This document shows, piece by piece, positions 6,903 through 63,783 of a DNA stretch of 64,000 nucleotides. Location of the stretch: the NCBI RefSeq assembly GCF_006345805.1, contig NC_043006.1, positions 51,212,001 to 51,276,000 on the forward strand, given 5' to 3'. Under the pieces are notes generated by a model. That model saw only the letters and a program-made list of their open reading frames with translations. It did not search any database and had not been told where the DNA came from. Positions within the stretch are counted from its first letter, which is position 1. Each line of letters begins with the position of its first letter. The translations under genes were made by a program, and so were the position numbers. The stretch is from Octopus sinensis (Eukaryota).

Positions 6903-7060
6903 ATTGGCTGAGTTTTAAGCAAGATTTGCCTACAAATAAATCAGAGGAAATGGGAGAGAGAGAATTTCATAAAGCGGTACAAGAGAAGGGGAGATATGTA
7001 GGAGAGAAGAGGGGAAAACTCCTCCACTATAAAACGGAGTGTTTTCGGCACCAGCAGTTA
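6903..7060 (+). promoter_or_regulatory. Core promoter of alpha-tubulin A
   Basis: Reverse CCAAT (ATTGG 6903-6907), GA-rich tract, TATAAAA at 7028-7034 and Inr-like CAGTT at 7055-7059, 28 nt after the TATA start; followed by a ~145-nt leader and ATG|GTAAGT. Confidence 0.7.
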
Positions 7061-7200
7061 CAAGCAGCTTCGCCCTCACGAAAGATACCTCATATCTGTG
7101 TGAGCGCCGCCTGCCGTGCTATTTTCCCACACAAAAAAAGAAAAAAATCTCTTCAAATTTCTTTTACTTTTTGTTCAACTGAAAACACATCAGATCCATT

Positions 7201-7203
7201 ATG
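7201..7203 (+). CDS. TUBA: Alpha-tubulin A, coding exon 1 (initiator ATG only); intron 1 = 7204..16206
   Basis: GATCCATT-ATG|GTAAGT behind a TATA/Inr. Exon 2 begins at Arg2 with no ATG, so an upstream ATG in phase 0 is required. The leader is homologous to the TUBA-B first exons. Confidence 0.8.
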
Positions 7204-10200
7204 GTAAGTTAATTATGTAACAATTAAGTAACAATGTATGACAATTTATTATGCAACAATTACTACTTTTAATTTCTTCATTAGTTTTGACACTTTTGAA
7301 ATGTTGAACTTAAATCTCAAACGATGCTGCTAATCTTTACTTCTCGTCTCTGCAATGGTTATAGTCAATACGATTTATTGACAGTAATCGCTTTAATGCA
7401 GACACTTATCCCAAAGGTTACCGATTTGTTTCACCCTCCCTCACCCCAAATATTACGATTGTGTACTACCGAAATATATTGAGCTCCGAATATTTAATTA
7501 CGTTGTGTGTTCCCCCAGATTTTTTTTTTTTTTGTGTGTGTATCACTGAAATTGATAAAATAAGTGCCAGGTAACGTATTGGTATCGATTTAAGCGATCA
7601 TATCCTCCCTCCCAGTTTGCAAAATTGTGAATTTGTGATAAAGTTTAAAATTTCGTCTGTATTGTGTCGAAAATCCCAATTGGTATATTAACTTTACTAG
7701 TCCTTATGAATAGACTGAAAAATTATTTTATTGTTCAAAAAAAAAAAACATTTCTTCAAATGAAACATCGCAGTTTATAATCAATCAAAAAAGAAAGAAA
7801 AAAAATTTGGAGTTTTATTTGCTTACCTTTTCCGTAATTTTTCAGTTTAATTTTCTTCCAGAAACTTTTTTCAGATTTGTGCTAAGAAGTTATGCAGTTT
7901 CTAAAAAAATATTATCGCAACCGTTAAAAACATAGATCTTGAAAGAAAAAAAAAATCAAATTAGGCTTGAAAAATTACAGAACGGTGGTGGGATTTTTTT
8001 TTTCTAATCGAAATTAACGATGCTTAAAGCATACACATCCGAAGAAATTACGGCTTTTGTCTCACGAAATAATTTGCGATTTTATAAGGAATTCTAGTTA
8101 CCGTTAATGGCTTCGTTATATGGCTTTAGTATAAATAACTACCCTCTTTATATTTCTCTTTTTCACTTGTCGATGTGATGCCAAACGTGCCTATCTAGTC
8201 AATTCAATTGAGGCCTATAGACAAGAGAAATCAGCTGTTTAATCCCAGATAATCCCCGATAGCAGATGTATTTCAGAAGGTTTTTTAGCTGTAACCTCTG
8301 TGTTTTTCCAAAAGTAAAATACGATGATTTTGAAGCAGACATTGGTGCGACTGAAAAGTGTAGCATAGTTCATTAATGAACTTGCACTGCAAAACTATAT
8401 TCAAATTATTGTTGACTAACAAAAAAAAAAAACATTTTTAAAGTGATTTGGCTGCTATTTCTAGCTAGATGAAAGAGCACGTAGAGGGGCTCCATACCAG
8501 CAATGTTCTGGATCAATGTGGATTTACAATCTAGAGCATCCTGCTTTTTCAGCGCATCTAGTGTGTGTCCCTATTTATTTTAAGACGATAGAATGTAGTT
8601 TGATTAAAATTTGGTTGAGGAGTCGTGTTAATTCATTATTTTACTTCACTGGTGTACTGTAAAGACGTTGCGAGCGAAATGTGTCAACCGTCGCAGGCAC
8701 TGCGTATTTTAGTAGTATACGTTATGAATCTCTGAATTTTCAATACAGTTGGGTTTAATTGACTGCTATTTCTGGCAGGTTGAGCGACGAGCTAGCCTTC
8801 AAAATCAGTTAGGAATGGCGATATAATCTGTCTAGTAGTAATAGTGATTATTCATCGTTAGGGATTCTATACATTTATTGATGAGTAATAAGTTCATCCT
8901 TCTCTGTCACCTATCCTCTACTTTTTGGTAATTTTGAGGAAAAGAATCTTTATATTCAAAGCTAAGTCCAAGATTTTTTTTCTTTTAAGATAAGAAATTC
9001 TTATCGAGCTAACGAGGCGTTCATAATGAAGCCACTCGACTTGCTAGAAACAACAGCCTAATCTACCTCGTATTACACCTACCCTCTTAGTAAAGAAAAA
9101 ATTTTTGATGGTTGTGGCTGAAATACAATAATCAAAGGCCTGGGCGATCACAGTTAACTTGCTTAAAATTCTGAACTTCCCTAACAAGTCTGGAATAAAT
9201 TTTTGTCTTTTGAAATCAATTTCTTCGTACGTTATGCAAAATAAAATTTCCACAAAAGTGATTCTATCATGACCAAAATACTTTATTCTTACTGGATTCA
9301 TAAAATTTTAGATCATTGGTGCAAATGCATATATTGTAGTTCGGGCCCACTCCAGAACTGATCGAACAGACTTATGATCAAGTAATTCCAACCATGCCCG
9401 TCTTGATGTATATGTGTTATATTGTTCAGTATATCTTTCCTTCGATTTTAAAGAAGGTAGGGTGAGGGTGTGATTTTAGGGAGATTTGATTGCTATTTTC
9501 TAACAGTTCGAATGAGAGTGTAAAAGATACGTCACCCAAGTGTTTACGTGGAGAAATATACATTTTCAAAACAGGATCGGTTAAAAAGTTGCGGCAAGAG
9601 GAACAGGCAAAGAAAAAAAAAAAAAGAAAAAACTTGTGACTGATTATTAAAAGAGATGTTAGTAAAAGAAACCAAGGCAATTAACTAGTCTTGTCGGATA
9701 TGACAAATAAAGATATTTAAACATTTGGTAAATTTTCAGATTAACACCCGCACGATTTTCACAAAAAAAAAAAAAAAAATACTCAGAGTTAATCTGAAAA
9801 TTTATCTTTTCTCCATCAAATTCTATTTTATAGCCATCTGTTTTATTGCATTCTTTTCTCTTATTTCCTACCTGAAAACTAAACTTTAAATACTTTTATC
9901 ATTTAAGAAACGGAATAAAAAAAACTAGGAGCGGTGACAACTAAGTGTCTGTTTTAACAAAGACAAATCAAATCAAAATAGATTTATCTAAATTCGTTGT
10001 TTAGAGTAAGGTCAAGGCACACCTACATCACATTCCCACATTGTGAATATTCTTTGTGTGGCTGTATGAGTCATGTATATTCTCGTGTGTGTATGATGAA
10101 TGTGTTAGGGTTTTGCTTGGTGCGTGTAATGAATGAAAATCTGTTGTAGTCTTTAATGTATAGCTCTGCAAGCATTATTGAAAATACGTGGATTATTATT

Positions 10201-11634: not shown

Positions 11635-11853
11635 AAGGCGGTGCGCTGGCAGAACCGTTAGCAGGCCGGGCAAAATGAATATTCGCATTTTCGTCTGCTT
11701 TTATGTTCTGAGTTCAAGTTCTGCAGAGGTTGACGTTGCCTTTCATCCTTTCGGGATCGATAAAATAAAGTACCAGACGAATACTGGAGTCGGTGTAATA
11801 TACTTATTCCACCACCCCAAATTGCTGGCCTTGTGCCAAAATCTGAAACTAAT
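11635..11853 (+). mobile_element. SINE family A copy
   Basis: AAGGCGGTGCGCTGGCAGAACCG head, core and GGCCTTGTGCCAAAATCTGAAAC tail. Confidence 0.8.
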
Positions 11854-14022
11854 ATTAAGTGATCTATGTTGATCCAAACGAGGGGACTTTTACGTAGTTA
11901 TTAAAACCTATTAGAAACAGTAACCAAATATCTGGCGGGTTTCCACTCATTTCTCAAATTTTAAGGTGTCTTCTACCACACCTGAGGTTACTGTAGATGA
12001 CACTTGTCTAAAGTAACCGCACAGTGTGATCGAACTCTTGTCCACGTTATTGCGAAGAGAACTACTTAACTATACAGGCATGTCTATTTTGTTATATGTA
12101 ATCTTGCATAACTTCCCACTCACTGTTCACTGAACCCAAACCTAGGGTTGATATTAAAAAATAGTGAGGTATTATTGGGGATATTAAAACACACATACAC
12201 ACACTTGAATATAGCAATACATATTTATGCTCGTATATCCGTAAAATGTTTAATTTAGTTTCTCAAAACTGACAGTAAAATCAAGATTTTTGTAGCATTT
12301 GAGATTTTTTCTTAATCCCCTCTCCATACATCCCTGTCTACACATTCAATTTTTCAGTACCATCTCCGCCTTCTATTGAATTATATGACGAACCAGTTGT
12401 TGCTGCTACACACAGCTGTTGCTACAACTTTTAGGCCTATCCTATAATCATTACTTCGTATAAGTGTTTATAAGTGGCAATTAAGAATCACTCTACAACT
12501 ATGTATTTATTTTAAAGGCGTTATTTATGTCAGTGACACATTACTTTAGAAAGATGAGTAACAAAATTTCAAAAATCTGTAGCATTCATTGCAAGAAGAA
12601 TGCAACCTCTACCCCAGTTTAAACTAATTGCTCCAAATAATTTCCTATTTTGACTAAAGCAGTATTTGAATCCTGAACATAACGACATCAGCATCGATCA
12701 CCATTATTACAGCCGTTTTTCATTTTGACCTAATCTAAGTGGTCGAAAGACCACTCCTTGAGAACAAATGTCTCAGTTTTGGTATGGTTTCTCTGGCTGA
12801 ATACCCTTCCTAACACCAGCCATTTTACTGTGTACGAAGTGCTTTTTTTTTTTCCTGTGGTAATTAACACTAATGAAGTCGCTTTGTAACTCGCAAGACT
12901 AAAAAGTTCCCTTAACTGGGAGAGAGGGTAGGAGATAGGGTCATTGCTACAAGTAAGGTATTGAGAAGTTTAATAAGTATGATGAAAGAAGCAGGAATGA
13001 GTTTACTTATGTGGGAAATCATGGCTACCTCACATTTTACATGGATGTCTTGGGTGAATAGATGGTGCCCCTAAGAGAGATAAATATCGTGGTGACGAAA
13101 TCCAAGCAACAAGTCCATTGTGGTGATGGAAAAAGAGCGTGAATACATAAGAATAAAGATGGTGGACAGATATAGGAGTAGGGAACAATGAGGGATGGAT
13201 GAAATGGTAATACGATGTTGTAATAATTAAATCAGTATAGAAAAGCATATCATCACAAGCTAAAGAAAGAACCTCTGCGTGGTTGCTAGAACTATCAGCC
13301 AAATCTCTCACAAATCATCCTACAGTCATTGAAAAGACAAGACACTAAGTATTATAATTTTAGATACTCTAATCCTGAAAAATACAGACGGATCTTGGCT
13401 GAAATGCCTTTTGGTCATATATCTGCTCTACAGAGATTTATTTGGGGTTAAACAACTTATCAGATAATTGGCATCATCATCTGAGAGTCACTCTTTCTCA
13501 AAAATGTATTTCCTGTTGGTGTTGGGTCGGTCAATTGCCTGAACCGAATGAATTCTAAGAATTGATGGATGACGTGACTCAGTCTGAGTCAGACAAGGCC
13601 AGACCGAGAGGAAGTTATTTCATTTTTTTTTCCACTTGACTCTCTGTGAAAAGGAGGTGATGTTGGCGAAGTGTAAAAGGGTGGTGGTAGTAGTGATTGT
13701 TGGAGCATTTTGTCTAAACAATAATTGTTACTGCTACACATTTGTTCAGACTTCCTGTGGCTTGACTCATGTTTATACGCATTAATGCTCCAAGCATAAA
13801 AGTAGTCTTTCTGTTTGTGTTCTTGAGGATTGCTAATAGAATATGTAGGTCAGTGGTGACCGTCGTAGGCATGAAACGGACTGGAAATAACAACAAACGG
13901 CTAAATTACGATATGAGTACCATAGTTATCAAGTGTGTGTTGGTATGTCGACGTATGAAGTCTTTGGAGACTAATTTCGAACGTGGCTCTCTTAATCGTT
14001 TATATATATATATATATATATA

Positions 14023-15138: not shown

Positions 15139-16182
15139 AAACTTTTCTCGAACTTTTCAAGCATGCAATACTTGATCTGTGTATGGTAATAAAATGCTGT
15201 ATTTAAACCTAACATTGAAACTGATGCTTCCAAACTTCAGTGACCTCTCTCTCTTTCTCTCTCTGTCGCTCGTTCGACCACTCTGTTCTTTCAAAAGTAG
15301 CGTTATGAGTTTTGGTCATGTTAGATGTAGTGAATGATACGTAGGATGGTAAGGGAGATAACTTCTACACAAATCTAGTAGTTTGGATGTGTGACTAATT
15401 TTATCAATGAAACTTTTATTCGTCTCTAAGAATTTTTTTAATTTCTGATTTGATATTTTTGCATCTCATATGAGCAATATTCATTATTCTCTCTAGATAT
15501 CTCGCTTGCATGTGATAAACTCCGACAGATACTAGACAATAGTATCTTGTCTGTACACATCAATTTTATCTCTCCTGACAGTACATTTACAAGCCATCGA
15601 GTGGAGCCTCTATTTGGTCGATTGTTCTGCTAGAAATATCAGCCAAATCTCCCTTAAGCCACACCCTGCTGTCATAAAGAAGCGTAGGATATATTCCTAG
15701 ATACTCTTAAAATGACACGATGGTCCTGACTGCTCCATTAAGGCTGATCTAGGCCAAGTAACAATACAGCTAATGTATCAGTGAAACTCAATCATTTTTT
15801 TTTTTTTTTTTTTTTTTTGTGCCGCGGACAAAAGATCACGCGGATAATAAACCTCAATAGGCATATGTAATATGATTATCAGATCATATTACACATATAG
15901 TACAAAAACATCCAGTTGTGGTAGCCAGTAAAAAACAGTAAGATGTAAAAAAAAGTTTATCTGTTCTCTGCAGCTTGGTACCAAATGATCCACTGCTTTG
16001 TTTGCAATCTAGTGGTTGGCGACCTCTGACCTAATCCATCAAGTAGCTGAGAATTAATGAAATTGTAGTTCAATCAACACTGCACCCACACAGTGTCGTT
16101 GAAAGGATTCAATTTGTTTTTGTAGTCTTATCTAATGAGGCCCCTTTAAAAAAAATTAATCAATTTCTTTTAAATTAATTGA

Positions 16183-17669
<1,487 letters not shown>

Positions 17670-17705
17670 ATGATTTAAAGACATTTGCAAGAACGATTGC
17701 TTGAA

Positions 17706-21936: not shown

Positions 21937-22480
21937 AGGCGCCGGCATGGCTGTGTGGTAAGAAGTTTGCTTCCCAGCCACATGGTTCAGGGTTCAATTC
22001 CACTGTATGGCATCCTGGGCATGTGTTTTCTACTATAGCCATGTGAGTGGATTTGGTAGACGGAAATTAAAAGAAGGCCGTCATGTGTGTGTGTCCCATC
22101 ACCCCCGCTTGACAACCGTTGTTGATATGATTAGGTCCCCGTAACTTAACGGTTCGGCAAAAGTGACCGCTAGAATAGGTACCAGGCTTTACAAAAATAA
22201 TAATAATAAGTACCTATTTCTTTACAACCCACAAGGGGCTAAACACAGAGGGGGCACAAGCAAGGACAGACAAACGGATTAAGTCGATTACATCGACCCC
22301 AGTACGTAACTGGTACTTAATTAATCGACCCCGAAAGGATGAAAGGCAAAGTCGACCTCGGCGGAATTTGAACTCAGAACGTAACGGCAGACGAAATACG
22401 GCTACCGGAGTCGATTAGTTCGACTAAAATTCCTCAAGGTGGTGCCCGAGAACGGCTGCAGTCTAATAATGTAAAAAGCA
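21937..22480 (+). mobile_element. SINE family D interrupted by an antisense Tx1-tailed SINE (22215..22402)
   Basis: Family D head and tail flank an inverted insert; TACC is duplicated at 22211-22214 and 22403-22406. Confidence 0.8.
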
Positions 22481-23228: not shown

Positions 23229-23440
23229 AGCAGGGAGCTGGCAGAATTGTTAGCAAGCCGGGCAAAATGCTGAGCGGCATTTCGTCTGTCTGCACGTTCT
23301 GAGTTCAAATCCGCCGAGGTTGATTTTGCTTTTCATCCTTTCAGAGTCGATAGAATATGTACCAGTTGAGTACTGACGTCGATGTAAACGACTTAGTCTC
23401 TTCCCCGAAATTTATGGCCTTGTGCCAAACTTTGAAACCG
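23229..23440 (+). mobile_element. SINE family A copy
   Basis: GAGCTGGCAGAATTGTTAGC head, core and GGCCTTGTGCCAAACTTTGAAACC tail. Confidence 0.8.
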
Positions 23441-25181: not shown

Positions 25182-26582
25182 TATTTCTTTATTACCCACA
25201 AAGGGGCCACGAAGAGGGGGACATTACAAGACGGGACATGGGGTACATAAAGTAAAAATAAAATATGAAGTAAAGATGAATTATATGTAATGAGATGGAA
25301 CGGCTTACGAACCCCCAACTCGCAGTTCCGTTTAAAATACAATTGTACATTTCACAATTACATATATTCCAGTTCAAAATACAATTTTACAGTTACATAT
25401 ATTCCAGTTCAAAGTACAATAATTTTACAGTTACATATATTCCAGTTCAAAGTACAATAATTTTACAATTTACATTTTAACATTACATATATTCCTGTTC
25501 AAAATACAACTTTACATCTTACAATTTTACAATTAACAATTTTACTTTTTAACCTTACATATATTCTAATTCTTTTATATTGGACGTTCGTCCGTCATAT
25601 ATTCTAATAGGTCCATTTGGTCTATTACATTTGGTAAATTGTCATACCGTACATAATGCGTTATATGAATAGCATTAAATATCTTTTTTAATTTTGTGTA
25701 TGTTTCTTTTTCTATAATTGCGCCTTTTACATCGTCACCATACAGTTTTGGGTTCACCTTCACCCTGACCAACCCTTTCCTACCTGCAAGTCTCTTTTCC
25801 ACTTCTGTATTCTTGATATACATCACAACTGCTTTCAGGTTTTTTCCTGTAGGCCTTCTTCCATATTTACACGATTCCAACTGCTCGTTCACTCTTGTCT
25901 CCCATTCTTGTTCAAACTCTGTCCTTGGCCGCTCTCTCGCCTTCTCTTTTACTTCCTGTTCTTTGCATGTTCTCTCTTCTTTTTCTTCTGTTATCTTGCT
26001 TTTGATTTTTTTCTTTTTTAGATCTTTCGGTGGTGATTCCACCCTTGTTCTCTTCCTATCTTCTGTTCTTTCCTCTTCTGCACTTGCTCGTTCTTCTCCC
26101 GTATCCTCATTTAGCTGCTCCTCCATTCGTGCTCTCCGCTCTTTCGCTTCCTCCTGCACTTCTCCTCCTCCACACACGCATTTTACACTCCTCTATTACA
26201 GCCTCCGGGTGCTTTTGTTTTTTTCCCGCGGGCACACATCCTTCATGTGGCCCCTCGATTTACAATTATAGCAGATTGGAGGTCTTCCCTCTACCACAAC
26301 TCTAAGCCGTGTCTCATCAGGGTAGACCAACTCCTCCGGGATGTTGTACAGGTCTCGCACGGTTATGTGTGCCAGAACCTGCACCGTATATCCCCACCAC
26401 TTAACCTCTGCTGACTTCTCCACCTTCAACACCTCCACACTATCCTTGCAGTTGAAAAGTACTGCCGCCAGCAACCTCTCCATATTAAATTCGGGCGAAA
26501 TTCTATTGATTCTCATCCTCACTGCCCTCCTTCCGCAGTAACTTGGTAGTAAAGTCCACGACGAATATTCTTCTGAGAAACC
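25182..26582 (-). mobile_element. ORF1-only non-LTR element (gag-like ORF1 with CCHC zinc knuckle, minisatellite 3'UTR, Tx1-type tail)
   Basis: ORFs 26196..26522 and 25575..26177 are in the same frame, separated by TAA TAG. VVVEGRPPICYNCKSRGHMKDVC is a C-X2-C-X4-H-X4-C knuckle. No EN/RT lies before the tail GGCCCCTTTGTGGGTAATAAAGAAATA. Confidence 0.8.
25358..25570. repeat. Minisatellite, ~35-38 bp unit, about 4-5 copies
   Basis: Repeated TTACATATATTCCAGTTCAAA(G/A)TACAA..TTTTACA. Confidence 0.9.
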
Positions 26583-30758: not shown

Positions 30759-32275
<1,517 letters not shown>

Positions 32276-33728: not shown

Positions 33729-34584
33729 CATAGGTGGCATCAAAAAGTTCCAGGACTAGTTATGTTTAATAAAAAATAACATCTAAATTTTAGCATCAAC
33801 ACCTTTGAAATGGTCACCTTGCACCACAATACACTAGTCCAAGTGTTCCTGTTACTTTTGGAATCTGGCCTGGAAGTCGTTTTCCATTAGCGAGTCGAAA
33901 GCCTTCTGCAATTTGCTCTGGATCTTGACAATGGTATTAAAACAGTAACTTTTGAGTTGCATTTTCATCTTGGGGAAGAGATCAAAGTCCACAGGTGCTA
34001 AATCTGGTGAATAGAGCAGGTACGGAAGCAATATGTTTTTGATGAGAAACTCAAGAGGTAGGAGAGCTCAGTGACACAGATCCAGTCACTTTTGCCAAAA
34101 GTCTTCCCTCAAATGCTTCAAAACTCTCGATTGATGATCTGACCCTGGGGGATGAATTCTTGATGCACACTACCACATTTCTGGGAGTGATGCTTATGGC
34201 AGATCTCCCAGATTGCTCATTGTCTTTCAAGGATGTTCTCCTGCTTTTGAAGCACCCATACCACTTGAACCATTGCACACGACTCATTGCCTCATCACCA
34301 TAAGCTTGCTGAAACATGCTTAGTGTCTCAGTAGCAAACTTATCAAGTTTAAAGCAAAATTTCATGTTGGCTCTCTTTGTTCCCATCTATGACAAAATCG
34401 CAGACTACAGCATACACATGATCACAAAAACACAAATTTCACAACTTGCAAAGTAAACCCAGCAATGTTACTTAGCACACTGTTTCATGAAGGTCACTGC
34501 TAGCTCTCACGGTGCACACAACCATGTGCTGCCATCTATTGGTACACTACAAAACTAGTCTGGGAACTTTTTGACACCCTCTCA
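33729..34584 (-). mobile_element. Internally deleted mariner element in TUBA-B intron 1
   Basis: Imperfect TIRs (..TCAAAAAGTTCC.GGACTAG) with TA flanks; N-terminal KRANMKFCFKL..ETLSMFQQAYGDEAMSR and C-terminal YSPDLAPVDFDLFPKMK; catalytic middle missing. Confidence 0.88.
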
Positions 34585-35020: not shown

Positions 35021-36293
35021 TGCATATATATATATATTTAAATATTTCTCAAGTCAATATTTAAATAGGGGGTCAAATTAAGAAAACTATATATGCATCT
35101 ATCCCCACTTCCTACACCCCATGGGGCAGTACTGCCCATTTTGAGAAGCATTGTTTTATTGGAAATGTTTAGTAGTATGATGCAGGTATAGGAGCAATTG
35201 TCTTCTAGTACAGTCTTGGGCCAATCAAAGTCTTGTGAGTGAATTTGGGAGATGGAAACTGAAAGAAGCCTGCAGTGTGTATGCGTTTGTGTACTCTTAG
35301 TTTGATTTCACATGATTGTAAATGAGCATCAATCATTCCCCATCTTCTGTGAAAAATGTCTGGCCATTGGGAAAGAGATGAAGAAAGAGCATCTGGCTGT
35401 AGAAAATCTGCTTCAACAAATCTTGTCCAACCCATGCAGGCATAGAAAAATGAATGTTAAAATGAGGTTTATATTGACAGTAAATTTACTTGTATGTTCT
35501 ATGCAATGTTTCTTTATGTTTCATTAACAATTTTCTGTCACTCGCTCTCTCTCTCTCTCTCTCTCTAACAGTTTGTCCTACTAGAAATAGCAGTCAAATC
35601 TCCCTTAAAACACTACTTGTCTTAAGAAAGGGGATGACATATTAGACAATGTAATCGTATATATACAAGCAGGATGGTCATGGTTACAGTATAGATAGAC
35701 CTGCATCAGTGGTTAACAACGATGGTCAGAATACATAAAAAAAAACACAGCCATCAAATCACACCACCAATCACTAGCATAATTATATCAAACTGCCATA
35801 AATAATTTTATTGACAGATTTCTTGTTCATTTGTTTGCTTATATGAAAATGAATTTATAACAGTTGAAAATATTTAAAAATGAGACAAAATGAGAGAGCT
35901 CCTAAGTGATTGATCGAATTGTAAGAAATAACAGCCAAATTTCACTTAAATCACACCCTACTGAATTTTTCCTTCTAAATTATATAACACATTTAACAGT
36001 GGAGTACTAGATATGCAAGAAGAGAGATGATCACGATTTAAAAGCCTCTGATCAACAGAGCTCATCTATCAGGGCTAGCCTAGGGCTAATTAAGAAAAGA
36101 ATAATCACATAAAAGAACCAAGAATTCAAAATTTATAAATGTAAAAAGAAATAAGTCGGTTCACCATCCCTACATTTCTTTAGCATTCTACTTCTAATTG
36201 AATAATAAATTCAACCTCAAAACGTAAAATAGCGGTCACTCACTATATAATAATAATGATGATGTCACTGATGATAATTAAAATTAATCTTAC

Positions 36294-36296
36294 CAT
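36294..36296 (-). CDS. TUBA: Alpha-tubulin B, proximal first coding exon 1a (ATG only)
   Basis: AATCCATT-ATG|GTAAGATTAATTT; context matches TUBA-A (ATCCATT-ATG|GTAAG); conserved leader hairpin at 36423-36453. Confidence 0.8.
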
Positions 36297-38149
36297 AATG
36301 GATTTTGGATCTTAAGATAAATTGAAAGACGAAGATGAGATTGTAGTGGTATTAGTTGTTGTAGATGCTGCAGTTGTAGCAGTCGCTGGAAGGTATGGTT
36401 GTTGTAGCAGTACTACAATGTTCGCTCATGGATTCGATGTATCCTTAATGAGGCCAAATATTGGTTATGAACGTCTGAGATGGTACCATGATTTTGAGTG
36501 TATATGTGTATATGTGTGCATGCGTGTGTGAGCGCGCCTCCTATAACTACTATCCTACACAATATTTATCGATTATATTTATTATATCATTATTTACTAG
36601 ATCCAAAACGAAGTGTCGTTTTCCACATCCTCTTTTCCACCATTTCGGAAACTCAGTGCTGGATCTTACAACCACCATCACCACTACAACAACCCGCCTT
36701 TTTTTTTTTCTGCGACATCTATCTTTCATTTTGTTTACGAATGCGTCTTTTCACAAACACAGATCCGAAATAGTCATATTCATACACAAACACATACAAA
36801 CGACAGGAGACATTGAAACAATCATACATGTATTTGTGTATATACACACACACACACACACACACACATAGACACTAAAAATTATGTAATATAGTCAATA
36901 AGAACATCTATGTGGTTGTCCTACTAGCTAGAAATAGCAGCGTATCTACGTTTTAGAGAAGGCCACATTTGATAATATAGTCTTATACATACTATATAAC
37001 ATACGCAGTTTCGAGTTACGTGTTTTTGAAAAGAAATCAATGGAAAAAATAAACCTCGACTCCATTAGATTTTTATCCGACTTTACGTCGATCCCAAACA
37101 TTTAAAATTATGAAAATAAAAAACCCCACTTAAATACCTTTACCGAGGAGGAATATCAAATAATACACGTTAAAATACGTAGAAACCATTTATTAAAACA
37201 TAACTTTTTTGGAAAATGTCTTTTCGTGTTAAGTTGTTTCTTGGAAGCAATTATCGATCTATGTTGAGGTATGCCTACATGTAGTATGACTGAGACAGTG
37301 ATTGCTGTAATATCTTTGCTCAATCAGGTCTGACCTAGGATTAAACAAGAAACATTTGCACAAACACTAAAGAGGAGTAAAATATGAAAGGCATGTACAT
37401 TCACAAATACACAATCTAGATAAGTAATTTACCATAACAGACACACATATACTGTCATTCGAACGTAAACACGCAGACAACGATAAACACTAGAAGTATC
37501 TTTAAAGATTATTATATACACGAACACATGCATATATTAACTGACGCAGTGTATTTGGTTGATGGAAACTACTTAAAGCCCGTCGCGCGCGCTCATATGA
37601 ATGTGTGAGTCTGCTCCACCACTTGTCAACTGGTATTAAGTTCCTTACGTTCCGTAACTTAGAGGTCCAGCAAAAAGAGACCGATCGAATAAATACTAAA
37701 CGTAAAATAAGTACTAGGATAGATTCAATCTATAAGGCTCCAGCATAGCCGCAGTCCAATAACTGGAACAGGAGTAAAGAGCGCACGCACACACAACGAT
37801 CACATGTATGCATGTGTGTGCGCGCAGTGTGATCGCAAGAACTTCCTCGTCTATCCTCCCTAAAGTGAAACTAGTGAGATTTCGATCAGTAAATCCCAAA
37901 GCAAAAAACTTCATTACTTTGCAGAAACCAGAGATTTAACCAAAGACCTTTAGACCTTGTCTAACATGCTCCTAAACGGAGATAATTTAACTCTGCAAAA
38001 TGGTCTAATTTGTTAAAATGCCATGAAAAAGCGAATATCTTGCTGAGGTATACCTAACTAAATGCATTAAATACAAATAAAGGAAAAACTAATTCCAATA
38101 AAAATAAAAGTGTCTCAGAAAGTATAAACATTTATGGCACCAAGAGACA

Positions 38150-38450
38150 AAATGGAAAAGGCGTTGCCCAGGAGATTGCCACTGATTCATGGGGCTCGCA
38201 CTTGCAGACAGCAATCTCTGCCCCGATACCGATGAGTTGGGATATGGTCCGGAGCCAAGAACACCGCAGGTCTCAACTGCCACAGGCTTACCATAAACCT
38301 GTTGGAAAGCAACCGATATCTTGACAGTTTTTTTTCTCAGCCCGACGAGCAGCGGAACCTGGTGATTAACACTAAATTGTCGATGGAGATGGTGTCACAG
38401 TATGTGATATCTCAGATGAGGTCTACTGTCATGGAACGGGAAAAGATTTT
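38150..38450 (-). mobile_element. CRE-clade-like (restriction-like endonuclease) non-LTR retrotransposon 3' fossil
   Basis: With frameshifts: PF..SR.LI*DITYCDT..GSAARRAEKK..RY..L..RF..KPVAVETCGVLG, matching the RLE-domain pattern WDxTxxDT..AAxxAExxKxxKY..PxAVETxGxxG. Confidence 0.7.
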
Positions 38451-39081
38451 TACTGACTTTTCTAATACAATTTCGTTCCTCACCCAACTTTCTTTTACTC
38501 TGAAATCGATAATCTATATACGTACATAAACCGCACGACGTATTGCAGTTATGACTAACACTTTCAGCGTAAGAAATGTCCGGGTTTTCTATTATATGTT
38601 TCAGCGCAAAGGCTGTGTCCATGCTGGAGCACCCAGCACATAATGCAGTTGTCGCTTAATATGCAGAAAACAGCGCCTCTCAAAACTATACAAATCACAC
38701 CCAGACTGCATTGAACAATATAGTTCCCAATATACAAACCACGGAATTGTCACGACTGGAGTGCCTTTCATCATAATTTTATTTTTACAGGTGGTTTGTT
38801 GGGGGGCTACACAACAGCACCGGTGTTTACTTCGAGTCACTGCGTGAACGCGACTTGTAGAGCATAGCAAACTTTTCTTCAAATCGCACCCTGCCATCTT
38901 AAATTAGGACAGGATGAATTGGCAAATACATCTCTAAACAGAACACACAGACAGGTGCGATATCTATATCTGCCTGTTTGTAACATCTGTTAGCAGATTA
39001 TGGAGGGCGCCTGTGGTGGGATAGTGTAATCTTGCAGCTTCAGTGGTAGACGAGATCTCTCTCTCTCTCTCTCTCACTGAA

Positions 39082-42055
39082 ATTGAGAACCACTGCGTTG
39101 GAGTGATTTGAACTTTTTAGCTATTTCGAGCTACCACGTAAAGCTCTCATTGGCTCTTACAACCAAACCTCGAAGGCTTGAATGCCCACCAACCGTATCG
39201 GATTCAACAATATTTAAACAACCCAAGGCGGCGAGTTGGCGGGCGAAATGCTTAGCAGTATTTCGTCTGTCTTTACGTTGTGAGTTCAATTTCCGCCGAA
39301 GTCGACTTTGCCTTTCATTCTTTCGGGGTTGAGAAATTAAGTACCAGTTGCGTACTGGGGTCGATCTAATCGACTGGCACCCTCCCCAAAATTTCGAGCC
39401 TTATACCCAGAGTAGAAAAGAATATTCAAACAACCCCTTCTGCAAAAATATGTTAAAATTTAAAATAAGGAAAGATTGCCAAATATTAAATAAAATTTAT
39501 TGATAAATAAGTAAAAAAAACGTCTTGCATTCGTCAATTATCCCTGTTGTGATATAAAATATATATGAACCAACTTTTAACAGATAAAAGATGAAGAGAT
39601 CCGTTGCCAGAAGTCGAATCAGTTATCGATCGCTATCCTACAGAGAGTTGGAAATTTCTAATTTTGCTTAGTTATTACGGAAGGACTTGGTGCTTTTTTA
39701 TTGTATTCTATGATCCGTCGTAACGTCTTCTATTTAGATTATAAAGAGAGAGAAAGAGAAAGAAAGAGAGATTCTCCAAAATTCGCTAGGTACTATATAT
39801 TTCTAAAATTACGAAAGGCTACATCGACATTGGTAGTATCTGAAAAGTAGAGACGCAATACATTGCAATGCGTTCTATCGGATGTCCAAACAATGTCATT
39901 GACTGCCTTGCATTCAGACAATTGTTCATACATACATACATACATACGAGAATTTTGCGAAAGAGATGCGAGCTGAAAGAAAAAGACAAAGCTCTGTTTT
40001 AATAGAGTGAAGGGAAATTGGAGGTGAAACGTGATAAAACAATTGTAATGGGTAAATGATAAAGATAAAATGCATTTATAATACTGAAGTGTATGCGTCG
40101 GTATACGAGAGATTTTGAGAGAGAGCATAAGAGAGGAAATTATATAAAGGGAGAGGAAGAGAAGAAATAATCATGTAAGTGAACACGAACAATGAAGAAG
40201 CATAAGTGATGACAAGGTATTTCTTATAAACAAATTTATTCCAGGCCATACAGAGCAAACAGAGATTATCATGGGAATTGAATATTCCATGCAGGGAAAT
40301 AGTGTTGCAAAACAACACAGTACAAGAAACAGAAGCAATTGATTAAGAATTACTGAATGGCAACGAAATAGACCTCGTCATTTTCGACGGGTACTACGCT
40401 TGTATTTAATAAATTTGGTATTTATATTTCGTGTCAAGTTAGAGCAGTGGAGTAGCAGAATCTGTGAGTTTAGTTTCCTCTCTTTATATTTTGTGTTCAA
40501 AAGACATCGGTAGCCGTTAAAATAGTTACCAGTTGTGTACTAGGATCGATATTGCCAATTTCTCCTGTACATATATCAATGTCATTGAGAAAGACTACGT
40601 TGTAGCTTCATCTGCTAAAATTAACATCCACAAATCTCTCAAATTACACTCTACTGTCTTGAAAAGAGAAGGCTAAGATGGTTATGACAGGCCTTCTTAG
40701 AGCATGGCTGATCTGTGTCAGAATAGCAACATGTGACCGGACTCAGTTAAACTAATAATCAACATAAAGACGTACTTAGGGTATCGAGAGCAGAGGCGAA
40801 AATTGCTTTTGCAATTTTATTCTGGTGCGAACGGTAAAATATTGTTTTAATGAATGAAACTGTTGGAAGTTTGCATCCCTCATCCCACCCAATGCTTGGT
40901 AAATGAATTGCTTTGAACACAATTATGAAATTGGCTATATTTGATACAGTTGTAAGGTTTGGCTTGGTGGACGGTCGACCAAACAGAAACGTAAATTTTT
41001 TTATAATTTCATCCAAAGCACTTAGATCTTTTGTTTCAGTTAACAATGGAGGTGTCGAGACGTAGAGGACATACATATACGCTATTGTTTGATTGTGCTT
41101 AGACCTAGCAATTGGTCTTAAACCGGTTCTGTATGTGGCGCTAAATAAAGTTAGTGTGTGTAGTAAATAAAAACTCTACAATAACAGATCAGCAAAGCTG
41201 TAAATGTTTTCTTGTTCAACACTCCGTTATATTATTAATAATGTATTAACAACATGTTAACATGAAGACTGAACGACTAGTGCTCTCTCTCTCTCTCTGT
41301 AGGATAGCGATCGATAATCGATTCGACTTCTGGCAACGGATCTCTTCATCTTTTATCTGTTATGAGTTGGTTCATACATATTTTATATCACAACAGGCAT
41401 AATTGACGAATGCAAGACGTTTTTTACTTATTTATCAATAAATTTTATTTAATATTTGGCAATCTCTCATTTTAAATTTTAACATATTTTTGCAGAAGGA
41501 GGGGTTGTTTGAATATTCTTTTCAACTCTAGGCATAAGGCTCGAAATTTTGGGGGAGGAGGACAGTCGATCAGATCGACCCCAGTACGCAACTGGTAATT
41601 AATTTCTCGACCCCGAAAGGATGAAAGGCAAAGTCGACCTCGGCGGAATTTGAACTCACAACGTAAAAACAGACGAAATACTTATTTCTTTACTACACAC
41701 AAGGTGCTAAACACAGAGAGGACAAACAAGGACAGACAAACGGATTAAATCGACCCAGTGCGTAACTGGTACTTATTTAATCGACCCCGAAAGGATGAAA
41801 GGCAAAGTCGACCTCGGCGGAAGTTGAACTCAGAACGAAATACTGCTAAGCATTTCGCCCGCCAACTCGCCGCCTTGGGTTATTTGAATATTGTTGAATC
41901 TTATACGGTTTGTGGGCATTCAAGCGTTCGAGTAACAGGTTTGTTTGTCTATTTAACCTATCAAGACTCTATAAGAGCCAATGAGAGAGCTTTACGTAAT
42001 AGCCCGAAATAGCAGCTAAAAAAGTTCAAATCAGTCCAATGCAGTGGTTCTCAAT
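39082..42055. repeat. Long inverted duplication: arms 39082..39647 and 41293..42055, spacer ~1.65 kb
   Basis: Colinear reverse-complement match across unique sequence and a SINE; arm 2 has extra insertions. Confidence 0.92.
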
Positions 42056-43503
42056 CTTTTAGGCTTCAAATTTGGAGGGTGAAAAAGTAGACGTTTAGTA
42101 TATTGTATTAAATTATAATGGCGTACAATGACGCTCAAGTCTTATTTTAAATTATATATTTGGCATACCTATGTCTCTCTCTGTCACGCACTAGCACATC
42201 TTTTGAAAGACACTCCTCAAACGTTTAAGAAAAAAAAAAAAAAAAAGAATACTTTTAATTCAAGTTTGCCGACCAGAGGAAAAGCTACTGACACATTTTA
42301 TGGAACCTAGGGTTATAAAAAGTTATGTTGACTAATTATGAATGTGTGGGGGTGGGACACGATACAAAGATAAATGTATGTCCATGAATGTCTATGCAGT
42401 GACATGAGCTGCCAGAGCTAAGTTAAATAATCACCCCTTAAAATCACAACTACTGTCTTCATCACCACTATTATTTGTTTTTCTTTTGTTACAAATTATT
42501 TAATTTTGATTTGTAGATTTCACAGACCCCTTGTCCATTCGAACACGCTAGTGGTTGAAGCACAAAACTGCCACATATATAAACCAGTGAGTGAGTCTTT
42601 GCTTGGTTAAGCTACTAGAAATAAAGAAAAGAAAGGAAACCCAAACCATACCAGATAGTCTTGAAATATAAAAGGAAGAACACATTGAAATAATGGAGTT
42701 CTAGACAAACAAATTGATGAGATGGTTATGTCCTGAACCAGCAACCACAACAATAATCACAAAAAAATAAATAAAATAAAACTTAAGCGCCGAGAAAGAA
42801 CTAAAGCTGTGTGTCAATTTTTTAAAGAACAATTTTCATAATATTTATGACCTAGCTGAATAATAAATTCGACCTCGAAACGGAAATAGCGGACACTCGT
42901 TAAATAACAATAACGGTTTTAAATTTTAGCAAAAGGCTAGAAGATTTTATGGGGGGATAATCGATTATATCGACCCCCCGCGCTTGACTGGTACTTATGT
43001 TGAGGGCAGAACAAAGGCGAATTAGAAAATGAAACAGAAAAGAGAGGGAGTATTTACATCGAGTAAATAGGAGAAATCAACAAAATCTTAATAAATAATT
43101 ATAGTACAAAATAAGAAAAAGGGATTCCCGAAATGTTGAAGTGGTGGGACCTTGTAGGGTGATCACGCACATCAACGGATTGTTCTGGCATACCAAAAGC
43201 AAGTACTTTCTCCCAGGGGTTTTTTTCTTTTTTTTTGCTGCATAGTTAAGAGTAATTAAATCCCTTTTGCCATGTCAATTTTGCCATTCTCTCAGAAATT
43301 TCATAAAATTTACTGGAGGACAGCATATCGCTCTCTATCACATTCATCTTCAAATAATACTTAAATAAACTGGCGAAGGTTTTTACCAACTGCGTTTACT
43401 ACGCAAATTCTTTCGCCAGAACTTACCACCTGACAGAGGAAAGAAAACTTTCCGTTCTTTAGATAATGCGTCACAGATGAAAGTTAAAAGAAATTAATCT
43501 TAC

Positions 43504-43506
43504 CAT
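43504..43506 (-). CDS. TUBA: Alpha-tubulin B, distal alternative first coding exon 1b (ATG only)
   Basis: GCCACT-ATG|GTAAGATTAATTT (13 intronic nt identical to exon 1a); leader homologous to 1a; no tubulin exon 2 found between 1b and 1a. Confidence 0.7.
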
Positions 43507-43624
43507 AGTGGCTTTTGATTTCGTTCAAGATATTCGAAAAACAAAGATGAAATCGAGAAGATAGTGATTGTTGTTAGAGTAGGTATCGCCGAAGTTGTAG
43601 TAGCAGTAGTCGTACAGCAATATT

Positions 43625-43704
43625 CGCTCACACGGACTTGATGTATCCTTTATGAGGTCGAAGATTTGTTTTGAGTGTCTGAATCGGTGTCAGTGGTTTA
43701 TATA
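43625..43704 (-). promoter_or_regulatory. Core promoter and 5'UTR hairpin of exon 1b
   Basis: TATATAAA on - at 43704-43697; predicted TSS near 43676; hairpin motif 43657-43625. Confidence 0.7.
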
Positions 43705-43856
43705 CGTATGCGTATCTGCATATGTATATGTGTGCGTGTATGCGCTTACATATGTGTGTGCATAGTAAGTAGTTCGACGACTATATATATATATTTAATT
43801 GTTCGCTACATTCCACTGTCATAGTCCTCCCTCCCTTCTCCTTTCATTTGCATCTG

Positions 43857-43917
43857 CCACCACTCATTATACTACTACTACTACTACCTTCACCATCACC
43901 ACCTACACCACCACCAT

Positions 43918-43966
<49 letters not shown>

Positions 43967-44050
43967 CCTACTACTACCCACAACCACCACCACTCATTAT
44001 ACTACTACTACTACTACTCCTACTACTACCCACAACTACCACCACTCATT

Positions 44051-44085
<35 letters not shown>

Positions 44086-44165
44086 CATAACCACCAATAC
44101 TACTACTACCACCACCACCACCACCACCAATACTATTATTACTACTACTACTACTATTGCTGCTG
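43857..44165. repeat. Compound (TAC)n/(CAC)n trinucleotide tract with three CACCACTCATTATACTAC units
   Basis: Read directly from sequence. Confidence 0.95.
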
Positions 44166-52178: not shown

Positions 52179-52641
52179 ACACACACACGCATAAGTGTGT
52201 GTGTGTGTGCGGGCGCGCGTGTAAGAGGAACTTAGTAATACACCCTTTAATCTCTTTCTCAAGGTAAAATTACTTCCAGATAACTGTGCTTCTGTAAAAA
52301 CTAAAATATGATATAGGAGTATTTTTTATTTCACATATATATGCATACATGTCCTAAATGTAACGCATCTAAATTCACCTGAATTAAAGAATATTATTTT
52401 TAAAATGTGTACGCAACATATAGTTAACAATAATGGTTTCAAATTTTGGAACAAGGCGGGGTAGGGGACCCCAGTATTCAACTGGTATTTATTTTATCGA
52501 CCCAGAAAATATGAAAGGCAAAGTCGGCCTTGGCGGAATTTGAACTCAGAACGTAAAGACGGATGAAATGCCGCTAAGCACTTTGCCCGTTGTGTTAACG
52601 ATTCTGCCTGTCCGCCGCCCTCATATAGTTAGCAAAGTGAA

Positions 52642-55460: not shown

Positions 55461-55499
55461 ATTATAGAATCGCAGTTTCAGCATCAAAGAACAATATCT

Positions 55500-55905
55500 C
55501 TTGTCTACTCTAGGCACAAAGCCCGAAATTTTGGAGAGGGGCCCAGTCGATTAGATCGATCCTAGTACGTAACTGGTACTCAATCTATCGACCGCGAAAG
55601 GATGAAAGGCAAAGTCGACCTCTGAGGAATTTGAACTCAGAACGTAAAGGCAGACGAAATACCTATTTCTTTACTACCCACAAGGGGCCAAACACAGAGG
55701 GAACAAACAAGGACAGACAACTGGATCAAGTCGTTTATATCGACCCCGACCCCAGTGCGTAACTGGTACTTATTTAATCGACCCCGAAAGGATGAAAGGC
55801 AAAGTCGACCTCGGCGGAATTTGAACTCAGAACGTAACGACAGACGCAATACGGCTATGCATTTCGCCCGGCGTGCTAACGTCTCTACCAGCTCCCCGCC
55901 TTCAA
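55500..55905 (-). mobile_element. Composite SINE (Tx1-tailed SINE joined to the 3' part of family A)
   Basis: Junction AAAGAAATA|GGTATTTCGTCTG on - at ~55655-55672. Confidence 0.85.
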
Positions 55906-55967
55906 ATAGCAATATCTCTAATGGAACAATTAATCTAACATTCTCCTCCGCACATGATTTAGTCTAA

Positions 55968-57422: not shown

Positions 57423-57849
<427 letters not shown>

Positions 57850-59820
57850 GTGCATATATATGCATATATGTTCTAATATCTACACAGCCTTGGTTTTTTT
57901 AGCTCGTTACGCAAAAAATTCTTATATGCATATATATATATGTGTGTGTGTGTGGTGTGTGTGTGTGTGTGCGTGTGTATGTATATATATGTATGTATAT
58001 ATGTATATATATATATATATATATTCATATATATATATAGCGATTATATATATATATATATATATAATATATATATATATATATTCATATATATATAGCG
58101 AGAAAGATAGAGAGACAGTCAGACAGACGTAGGCATGACTGTACGCAACGATGTCATACCGGGTTTGGTTCCATTGCAAGACACCTTTGGCGAGTGTCTT
58201 CTACTATGGTCCAGGGTTGACCAATGCTTTGTGAGTGGATTCAGTAGACGAAAACTGTGCCAAAGCCCATGATCTATGTATGTGTGTGTGTTTGCGTGCG
58301 CACGCATCCGCCGCTTCACAAACGTCTGCCTAATTTCGTAACCCAGTTTTTCATTTCACAGTTGGTTAGGTTCATTTCACTCTCAGATGATGTATGTAGT
58401 TATTGTTGTCAGTCACAGTTGAATAGATCTACGAACGTAAATGTTCCACTCATGACTATTCCGTTTTATATTCAGATTCAGTACTTCTACTTTTATTATT
58501 CTTATTTCAAATCGTACTGAGGTCAGCTTTACCCTTCTTCTTTCGCAAGGTTAACAAATTAAAGTATCACTGAAGTACTGGGGTCGATTTAATATTCCTA
58601 TAATGCGTCCTAGAAGCGAATGAAATGTTAGAAGATAAGACAAGATAGTGGAGTATATTTCACTGCTATTTTTAGCAGGTCAAACATACACATAGCGTCT
58701 ACTCCTTTGGCACACCCAATTATATGATTAAATACTCTGGTAATAACACAAACGTTCACAACTTATTGTTCAGACTTGCTACAGCTCTAATGTCGATGGA
58801 AAGTGGGGGATAAACATCTGATGATAGAAATGATAATGATGGAGATGATGAAACTTCTGATGCGGTGGCGATAGAGATGATACTGATAATGATACTGATA
58901 TAGTCAAAACTCGGTTATCAGAAAAATCAGTTATCCAGACAAAATGCTCTCAATCTGTTTTGTTCAAGCCGTCGAAATTTAACTATATATCGACGTACTG
59001 TATACAGACATAGTACGCGCACATACGCACACACTTGCACACGTACGTATGCATATTGTTGAAAATTTGGAAGAAAGTACTTAGTGCGCTTATGATATCT
59101 CAGAAATCTGTTGTTGTTTTTTTTAATTTAAAATTATCAAACAAAAATTATCTGTTTAAAAACAGATTAACACAGACCTGATGGATGATATGAAGAAAAT
59201 TTTTGTGTAAGTGCTTTCAACCGCGATTGTCTCTTTAGACACCTGTCTAAACAAAATCTAATCTCTTTTTAAAGAATTCTTTAAATACAAAGACACATAC
59301 ACACACACAAGCAGACATGAGAGCTGTCGTTAGGACGTTCGTTCATAGTCACAGGTGTTTCGAGTTCAGTCCCAGTATGCGGCACTCTGGACAGGTGTCT
59401 TCTAGTTTGGCTTTATGACCAATGCCTTGCAAGTAAGTGTACGTGTTGCGTGCGTGCGTGCGTATTTCTTAGCGCTTGGCAGCGATGTAGATTTGGTCAT
59501 GTATCTGTAGTTTGGTAGTTCGGAAAAAAGAAAGCGATAGAGTAAGTCCCAGAACTGGGGACGATTTTATCGACTAAAAAGCTCTTTAAAGCGGTGCTCC
59601 TGCATGACCATGGTCTAATAATTGACACAAGTAAAAGAAGAAATGAATAGGTGCAGGAGTGGCTGTGTAGTAAGAAGCTTGCTTCCCAAACACATGGTTC
59701 CGAGTTCAGTTACACTGCGTGGCACATTGGGCAAGAGCCTCGGGCCGACCAAAGCCTTGTGCGTGGATTTGGTAGACGAAAACTGAAAGAAACTCGTCGT
59801 ATATAAATATATATTAATTA

Positions 59821-61752: not shown

Positions 61753-63025
61753 CGAGGGGCGTTCAATAAGTAATGCCCCTGACCCACTTCCCATAGCAGT
61801 AGAGCAACGAAACTTGGCACAGTTATTAGTCTTTTTCTACATAGGAACCACCCAGAGTTACGCATTTCTCCCATTGTTTGATGCAGCTCTGGAGACCGTT
61901 TTTGTAGAAGACCTCAGCTTGGTCCTCCAACCACGACGTGACTTCAGAAATCAAGGCTGCATCATCTGGGAAACGCTTTCCTTTCAAAAACAACTTCATG
62001 GCTGGGAAGAGGTGAAAATCAGAGGGTGAAAGGTCAGGAGAGTGGGGAGGATGGGGGAGGAGTTCATAGCCGCACGCCTGTGCTTCTGATCTGATCTGGC
62101 GTTGTCCTGCAGGAGGAGGATGCCTTTGTTGATCTTGCCCCGCCTCTTGATTTTGATAGCTTCTCTTAATTTCCTCAAAAGTTAAGCATAATAGGCTCCT
62201 GTAATTGTGGTACCCTTTGCCAGGAAATCTGTCATCACTACTCCGTTCTGATCCCAGAAGACTGTGAGTATGACCTTGCCAGCGGAGAGCTGCACCCTTA
62301 CCTTCTTTGGAGGAGGTGAGTCACGGTGCTTCCACTGCATTGACTGGGCTTTGGTCTCTGGGTCATAGTGATGGACCCAGGTTTCATCCTGTGTAATCAG
62401 TCTTTTGAAAAATTTTGACTCATCTTCTTGGCACATCTCCAAATTCATCCTCCAGCACTCGACGCGTTCTTGCTTCTGGAAAGGTGTGAGCAACCTGGGA
62501 ATCCATCTGGCAGACACCTTTTGCATATGCAAATGGTCATGAATGATAGTTTCCACAGACCCGATACTAATCTTGACCTCATGGGCTATTTGGCGAATAG
62601 TTATGCGTCGATCTTCCAAAATGGCAGCCTCAACTTGACAAACAAATGCCTCATCAATGGCAGAAGGGGGCGACCAGATCTGGGAGCTGTTTCTACAGAG
62701 TTCCGACCATGTTTGAATTCACGATGCCAGCGTTTTACAGGGTCATATGATGGGGCATCATCACCATAAGTTACTTTCATTTCATCAAAAGTCTCCCGTG
62801 GTGTGTGTCCTTTCAAATACAAAAACCGGATCACTGTTCGACACTCAACAGGCTCCATTTCACACTTGACTCAGTTCAAACACCTATGAATCAGAAACCA
62901 CAATTAGTTCAGAGCTGTAATTTTCCACCTAATCTATAGAGATATAAATAATTGCACATGCAATATTTCAGCTAGATCAAACAACTGCAAGTGGGTCAGA
63001 GGCATTACTTATTGAACGTCCCTCG
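61753..63025 (-). mobile_element. Near full-length mariner (1273 bp, irritans/Himar1-like); transposase pseudogene 62858..61826
   Basis: 37-bp TIRs with 2 mismatches; TA duplication (61751-52, 63026-27); MEPVECRTVIRFL, WIPRLL, DETW, QDNAR, SPDLSPSD; one frameshift, one in-frame stop (62182-84) and a small deletion. Confidence 0.96.
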
Positions 63026-63147
63026 TATATATATATATAGCATGTATAATGTGTGTATATATGTGTACATATATATGTATGTATATGCATATATGTAGAT
63101 GCATATATATAGATGTATATATATATAGATTTATATGCATATATATG

Positions 63148-63188
<41 letters not shown>

Positions 63189-63409
63189 GTATATACATAT
63201 ATATATAATATATGTATATAATGCATATATACATTATATATATATACATATATATGTGTGTATAGTGTATATATATATATATATGTATACACGTATATAT
63301 ATATGTATCTATACATATATATATATATATATATGTGCATATATGTAATATGTATATATGCATATGTATATATACATATATATGTGTGTATATAGTTATA
63401 TGCATATGT

Positions 63410-63465
<56 letters not shown>

Positions 63466-63783
63466 ATATATATATACATGTGTATTGATATTTGTATATG
63501 TATATATATATATGTATGTATAATTGTATGCATGTATGTTTATACATGTATATATATATATATATATATATGGAAAAAAAGTCAAGATAGAAAATGCTAA
63601 ACTAATTTATGAAAAACATTTCAGTACCGGTTCAGTCATTGAGACTTTTTCACCTGTAACAATTAGATAATTAAATTAGAAAAATTAAAAAAAAAGTTTT
63701 TTTAAAAGAATTTTGGATAGTGCTCAAATACAAGTGGCATTTTCCTTGTTTCTGCTGTCTCTGTCTCTCTTGTTTACTCTTGT

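Follow-up and report, generated by a model that had tools for sequence, protein, structure and literature searches.

How can an alpha-tubulin gene possess two first exons and a single protein product? The question is raised by a 64,000-nucleotide (nt) stretch of the Octopus sinensis genome (contig NC_043006.1, positions 51,212,001 to 51,276,000 of assembly GCF_006345805.1), hereafter the window, which has a G+C content of 37.6% and contains a convergent pair of alpha-tubulin genes. Upstream of the minus-strand gene lie two exons, designated 1a (proximal) and 1b (distal), each of which consists of an untranslated leader and the initiator ATG. A first-pass annotation of the window had proposed that this duplicated promoter and leader module provides one tubulin body with alternative modes of expression and an unchanged protein. 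The anatomy of the two modules, their homology and the conservation of their functional sites are established below. That both modules feed the one body, giving two promoters and the same protein, is a reading which, from the sequence, we put at about an even chance; we infer within it that both promoters are active and both splice junctions used.

The duplication of the ATG-only exon was readily confirmed. The 16-mer ATGGTAAGATTAATTT occurs only twice on both strands of the window (128 kb in all), at 43506-43491 in 1b and at 36296-36281 in 1a. Both copies lie on the minus strand, 7210 nt apart, and in each the ATG is followed directly by the donor GTAAGATTAATTT, the first 13 intronic bases being identical (43491-43503 in 1b and, as read from the sequence, 36281-36293 in 1a, both minus strand). 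Exon 1b (43504-43680, minus strand) comprises a leader of ~177 nt that contains no upstream ATG, and the ATG at 43506-43504; its putative 5' end is A 43680 of an initiator-like TCAGAC (43677-43682, minus strand), and a canonical TATA box, TATATAAA (43697-43704, minus strand), is found 24 nt upstream of that A. Exon 1a (36294-36476, minus strand) has a leader of ~183 nt, likewise with a putative 5' end, and its ATG at 36296-36294. In its core promoter (36473-36500, minus strand) the initiator-like hexamer is retained (TCAGAC, 36478-36473) and is the only core promoter motif, the site homologous to the TATA box reading CACTCAAA (36500-36493), with no more than a weak TATACA in its vicinity. The 1a leader also contains an upstream ATG (36429), absent from 1b, which opens a 1a-only upstream open reading frame (uORF; 36352-36429, minus strand) of 25 codons that is out of frame and stops 55 nt before the main ATG. 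The description given by the first-pass annotation, of a strong TATA box in 1b and a weak TATA-like stretch with a uORF in 1a, was therefore accurate. The shorter string ATGGTAAG is found at six sites in the window against ~2.5 expected (an estimate from base composition); leaders account for three of them. The sites at 38294 and 56292 (both minus strand) were set aside, as they show no leader homology and their number is as by chance.

Both exons can be joined to the same coding sequence. Exon 2 of the minus-strand gene (31987-32209, minus strand), identified by tblastn and translation, begins at 32209 after the acceptor ...ttgttccag and encodes codons 2-75 (RECVSIH...), and exon 3 (30759-31885, minus strand) extends to the stop codon. 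Conceptual splicing of an ATG to 32209-31987 and 31885-30759 gave a 450-amino-acid (aa) alpha-tubulin starting with MRECVSIH, which an exact look-up matched to XP_029641494.1 (‘tubulin alpha chain’, Octopus sinensis). Each of the two exons contributes only a phase-0 ATG, and the sole acceptor with a coding exon is that at 32209. Since both ATG exons would join this acceptor, the protein obtained from 1a and from 1b would be identical, as had been claimed. With exon 1 made of 5' untranslated region (5'UTR) and initiator codon, a phase-0 intron and an exon 2 that starts from Arg-Glu-Cys, the gene has the standard animal alpha-tubulin layout. The body of the plus-strand paralogue (16207-17669; exon 2 at 16207-16429, exon 3 at 16543-17669) also yielded a 450-aa protein when an ATG was added, matched by exact look-up to XP_029641493.1 (‘tubulin alpha chain isoform X1’, Octopus sinensis); 14 residues distinguish it from the product of the minus-strand gene. 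Each protein is recorded on one contig only, an NCBI chromosome of 105.9 Mb. A homologue search returned mostly long fusion models, with Enteroctopus dofleini TBA (96%) as the nearest named cephalopod match, and Met36-truncated isoforms of either paralogue were absent from the protein collection searched. Neither the look-ups nor the homologue search turned up an assembled octopus transcript. The representative of a second cluster among the protein look-ups was an annexin and hence uninformative for tubulin.

The homology of the two leaders, which the first-pass annotation had also asserted, was supported by BLASTN (36264-36478 against 43470-43682, 68% identity over 225 nt, E = 3e-15) and by global alignment (191/262 = 73% identity, z = 36 against shuffles). 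It continues into the intron, where BLASTN revealed a colinear block (36199-36256 and 42857-42913, 84% identity over 58 nt). By BLASTN and nhmmer the 1a copy of this intron-start block occupies 36191-36261 (minus strand), that is intron positions ~+33 to +103, and the 1b copy 42852-42916 (minus strand; nhmmer E = 2.4e-7 against the 1a block). The block in 1b is shifted ~550 nt downstream by extra sequence absent from 1a (42917-43470, minus strand), which includes a fragment of a repeat dispersed in the window (42905-42998). Present in 1a and 1b and not found in the third module described below, the block is a candidate intronic cis-element similar to that of the sea urchin gene Pl-Tuba1a. Overall, detectable homology starts at about the core promoter and stops ~100 nt into the intron. 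The remainder of the 7.2-kb interval is unalignable, and because it has diverged beyond detection, the unit from promoter to +100 appears to be constrained in both copies. A loosely gapped local alignment that would have extended the homology upstream ran through low-complexity GGT/GTA and CA/TA tracts and was not relied on. Microsatellite-like tracts rich in GGT/GTA are found at 43851-44156 and 36660-36700 (minus strand), ~350-650 nt upstream of the 1b and 1a ATGs; they may extend the duplicated unit further, but their complexity is too low for them to be called homologous.

A search of the window using nhmmer with a profile made from 1a and 1b returned one further significant match at 7063-7213 (plus strand, E = 2e-6). 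This third module, P (7028-7203, plus strand), contains TATAAAA at 7028-7034, CCAGCAG at 7051-7057, a hairpin at 7072-7108 and an ATG at 7201-7203 followed by GTAAGT. Its box CTTCGCCCTCACGAAAGATACCTCATATCTGTGTGAGCG is nearly identical to that of 1b (32/39 positions), its exon ends in ATCCATTATG directly before GTAAGT, and the spacing of its TATA box is 25 nt. All three modules follow the ATG-only layout of exon 1. The plus-strand gene has its exon 2 9.0 kb downstream of P on the same strand, and P is therefore probably the distal first exon of that paralogue. In the vicinity of the same gene, ATGGTAAGG was noted at 15346 (plus strand), where ATG is followed by GTAAGG (15346-15353) 858 nt before exon 2, together with TATTTAAA at 15201; the leader at 15201-15353 is CT-rich and not homologous to 1a, 1b or P. 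The 15346 site may provide a proximal alternative first exon or may have arisen by chance, and the RefSeq label ‘isoform X1’ implies another isoform of the plus-strand gene.

Comparison with P allowed changes to be assigned to either copy. When P alone was used as the query, 1b was detected (E = 5e-5) and 1a was not; therefore P would have split from the 1a/1b pair first, and the duplication that gave 1a and 1b would be later. With P as the outgroup, 11 derived changes were counted in 1a and 6 in 1b, a difference in rate that is not significant (p = 0.33). The distribution of these changes differed along the module, with 7 in 1a versus 1 in 1b in the hairpin box, and 0 in 1a versus 2 in 1b in the start-codon context, for which 1a (ATCCATTATGGTAAG) matches P at 15/15 nt. 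In turn 1b shares with P the TATA box, the 32/39 positions of the hairpin box and a leader free of upstream ATGs. The ancestral states retained thus differ between the two copies, neither of which resembles a neutrally decaying relic: 1b keeps its ATG, donor, core promoter and structured leader, and 1a, with its TATA box lost and a uORF gained, keeps its ATG, donor, initiator-like motif and hairpin. By this comparison 1b is the copy with the ancestral TATA promoter and 1a the more changed one, and 1b is not obviously an extra or orphan copy.

The hairpin noted by the first-pass annotation in both leaders of the minus-strand gene is likewise present in P. The same two-stem structure is found ~20-55 nt past the putative start in all three leaders, at 7072-7108 in P, at 43659-43623 in 1b (minus strand; two stacked stems, z = -2.4) and at 36455-36421 in 1a (minus strand), with local fold energies of -12.6, -9.4 and -6.5 kcal/mol, respectively. 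In a three-way alignment 93.8% of the cells were paired, versus at most 55% when the 3' partners were slid by 1-3 columns, and two pairs were compensatory (C-G / U-G / U-A and A-U / G-C). Every pair is retained in 1a, where a specific G-to-A change and a 2-nt deletion leave the helix intact and create the upstream ATG within its 3' arm. The folds of the whole leaders were no stabler than those of shuffled sequences (z = -1.0, +0.3 and -1.75), and the local hairpin alone stands out. No Rfam family matched the hairpin at its gathering score, and scanning of Joint Genome Institute (JGI) metagenome contigs found no further hairpin box. We suggest only tentatively, and with some doubt, that the alpha-tubulin mRNAs of cephalopods carry, in this ~35-nt stem-loop common to the three leaders, a cis-regulatory element that is as yet undescribed. 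Such an element could govern translation, stability or localisation, or might act at the DNA level as a downstream promoter element. If it does so, the start of the 1a uORF inside the 3' arm would subject an unchanged protein to different translational control, and the duplicated module would diversify post-transcriptional as well as promoter control.

The claim that the module had been duplicated rather than the gene did not hold, as the gene too is duplicated: the convergent paralogue at 16207-17669 has its own module at 7028-7203. The bodies of the two paralogues are remarkably alike, with 96.4% identity in exon 2, 95.8% in exon 3 and 91% when only third codon positions are counted. Intron 2 can also be aligned, and 16194-17671 (plus strand) and 32223-30757 (minus strand) are 93% identical across 1488 nt, intron 2 included. 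The edges of this homology are sharp, as it starts 13 nt 5' of exon 2 and stops 2 nt past the stop codon. The leaders, at only 64-73% identity, are far below the bodies, and in their leaders, intron 1 and 3'UTRs the two genes are either unrelated or can hardly be aligned; intron 1 of the plus-strand gene shares no colinear homology with the introns of the minus-strand gene except for dispersed repeats. The combination of similar bodies with diverged leaders looks like the signature of gene conversion, or of recent body copying, between old inverted paralogues. An alternative is strong codon constraint plus a more recent duplication of the body. The near-identical octopus bodies with their sharp homology edges show the same pattern as concerted evolution between inverted paralogues with diverged flanks, of which they would be a candidate case.

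From these observations the following mechanism can be proposed for the minus-strand gene. Each module consists of a core promoter, a leader of ~180 nt with its conserved hairpin, the ATG-only exon and ~100 nt of conserved intron start. Transcription would start either at the distal 1b, with a TATA box and no upstream ATG, or at the proximal 1a, with no TATA box and a uORF, and in both cases the same donor would be spliced to the acceptor at 32209, giving two mRNAs that encode the same 450-aa protein. These would differ in promoter strength or specificity, in leader sequence and, via the 1a uORF, probably in translation. Under general splicing rules a first exon carries no acceptor and its transcript is spliced to the first competent downstream acceptor; since exon 1b is a first exon without an acceptor, a 1b transcript running through the interval would join 32209 by default. 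The arrangement would have originated by tandem duplication, either of the module alone or of the whole gene with subsequent deletion of the upstream body, and both histories give the same working arrangement unless 1b is silenced.

As to what lies between the two copies, the first-pass annotation, which had reported no tubulin exon 2 in the interval, was corroborated. A tblastn search at word size 2 detected only the two known tubulin bodies in the window and none between 1b and 1a, and nhmmer (--max) searches for the body, for the 3'UTRs and for the 3' ends of intron 1 gave nothing with E < 0.1 in the interval 36.3-43.5 kb (best E = 0.14), so that no decayed body was found by either method. 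The ten longest open frames of the same interval contained no real Pfam domain, and Rfam gave zero matches at gathering thresholds across the window. Two inverted copies of a window-wide repeat are present in the interval (39082-39647 and 41293-42055), the rest of which is unique within the window. An assembly gap, which had been raised as a possible hiding place for another body, is absent, as the window contains 0 N.

This repeat belongs to a family resembling short interspersed nuclear elements or miniature inverted-repeat transposable elements, ~380 nt long with internal sub-repeats and more than 10 copies in the window, further copies being found at 1816-2611, 4931-5330, 11635-11856, 22208-22404, 23230-23439, 52467-52628 and 55493-55909. 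Other mobile-element remnants comprise a Mos1-type HTH_48 fragment within intron 1 of the minus-strand gene (34051-34386, minus strand, E = 1.5e-8), a mariner Transposase_1 remnant (62182-62619, minus strand, E = 5e-18) and a gag-like open reading frame with a CCHC zinc knuckle (26196-26522, minus strand), whose E value of 7e-4 falls just under the Pfam cut-off. Long, imperfectly palindromic low-complexity arrays rich in TA/CA, which match themselves in both orientations, occupy 63025-63572 and 57772-58097.

The way in which the modules are conserved argues for continued selection on both copies: homology extends only from the core promoter to ~+100, the changes in 1a keep the hairpin, and 1a keeps the ancestral start context. 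Several points weigh against the use of both modules. The loss of the TATA box, the gain of an upstream ATG and the 7 versus 1 derived changes in the hairpin box could mean that 1a is decaying. The identical donor string is the feature that first revealed the pair, and its perfect conservation is thus partly an effect of discovery. The protein of the minus-strand gene has one XP accession, found on the NCBI chromosome only, which fits a single annotated transcript. Lastly, the covariation of the hairpin across the three leaders is suggestive but, with three sequences, not significant against a shuffle control (120/500). In one alternative, which we regard as unlikely, only 1b works, as the ancestral distal promoter mirroring P and with a first intron of 11.3 kb, and 1a is a younger, stranded duplicate that is decaying or serves as a minor start. 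The features that P and 1b have in common (the TATA box, the spacing of 25 and 24 nt between TATA box and initiator, leaders without upstream ATG, and the hairpin box), the detection of 1b and not 1a by the P-only query, and the derived state of 1a, with its 2-nt deletion, would all be accounted for, and the first intron would be long in both genes (9.0 and 11.3 kb). However, 1a retains its ATG, its donor, TCAGAC, all hairpin pairs, the intronic block and 15/15 positions of the start context, of which a long-dead copy at ~27% divergence should have lost some, and TATA-less promoters are common.

Conversely, 1a may be the only exon in use, with 1b the silent orphan promoter that remained when a third tandem paralogue lost its body by deletion. 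This possibility, which the first-pass annotation had named as a refutation of its own proposal, seems to us quite unlikely. Exon 1a is the closer to the body, the single XP accession would be explained, and the 550-nt insertion with its repeat fragment, which parts the 1b donor from the intronic block, might impair an intron-start element similar to the one essential in the sea urchin gene. Yet the 1b promoter is the best preserved of the pair, with its TATA box, initiator-like motif, leader free of upstream ATGs and hairpin of -9.4 kcal/mol, and the interval yielded no trace of a body, a 3'UTR or a poly(A) region; moreover an intact 1b left after deletion of the body would read through to exon 2 unless silenced, which turns this alternative into the use of both modules. 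There is little probability that 1b is active for some other product, such as a non-coding or prematurely terminated transcript or one with an unrecognised exon in 36.5-43.4 kb, and yields no tubulin mRNA. Poly(A) signals could reside in the repeats and many AT-rich stretches of the 7.2-kb interval; searches of it gave no protein domain, no Rfam match and no conserved frame, and a retained phase-0 ATG with its donor makes most sense when joined to a coding exon. An artefact of assembly, in which a haplotype had been collapsed or duplicated or a mis-join hid another tubulin body, has nothing found in its favour and is scarcely credible for a window without N in which the flanks of both copies are unique and the copies themselves are only ~73% identical, with indels and an insertion, far beyond the divergence of haplotypes.

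If both modules are indeed used, the locus would offer a clean natural example of a protein with housekeeping and neuronal roles, itself highly constrained and unchanged, whose regulation has been diversified, and three diverged promoter-leader modules would drive two near-identical coding bodies. For the annotation of cephalopod tubulin genes it is useful to know that distal first exons may lie 9-11 kb upstream, where they are easily missed, and the modules could guide the choice of promoter and intron-1 fragments for cephalopod transgenesis as well as the study of a conserved 5'UTR hairpin. No new class of mechanism is opened here; the alternative-promoter layout is ordinary. The by-products are of more note: a third module, a hairpin conserved in the leaders, and homogenised bodies set against diverged promoters.

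The likeness to variable-first-exon clusters that the first-pass annotation had drawn is weak. In the protocadherin and UGT1A clusters, tandem first exons with their own promoters are joined to common downstream exons, and these first exons, from about ten to dozens in number, encode large variable parts of the protein. The octopus gene has two copies, each of which supplies Met only, protein variation is absent and the profile scan found no further copy but P. A closer parallel is offered by genes in which alternative first exons lead to one protein, such as BDNF, NR3C1 and CYP19A1, and Rbfox1 reportedly gives an identical protein from alternative promoters and first exons. Alternative promoters yielding one protein are widespread, and the octopus layout is a known arrangement of this common kind. 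As in systems of the Rbfox1 type, several promoter/leader exons would join a common exon 2, the protein would be unchanged and regulation would act via transcription and the 5'UTR; the octopus first exons differ in that they also carry the start codon, are tandem paralogues and are ones whose use we infer. An ATG-only first exon is also usual in vertebrate alpha-tubulin genes.

A further counterpart is the sea urchin gene Pl-Tuba1a, whose exon 1 consists of 5'UTR and ATG only (PMC5283682). Conservation between species in this gene covers the TATA box together with the leader and the ATG-only exon, and reaches ~95 nt into intron 1; its expression requires both the TATA box and the intron start (PMC5283682). 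The octopus modules resemble it in their ATG-only exon 1, in a TATA box (1b and P) ~25-30 nt upstream of the start and in a module that extends ~100 nt into intron 1. Pl-Tuba1a has been described with one module, whereas the octopus has two upstream of one body and a third at the paralogue, and the first introns of the octopus genes measure 4-11 kb compared with 0.8 kb in the sea urchin.

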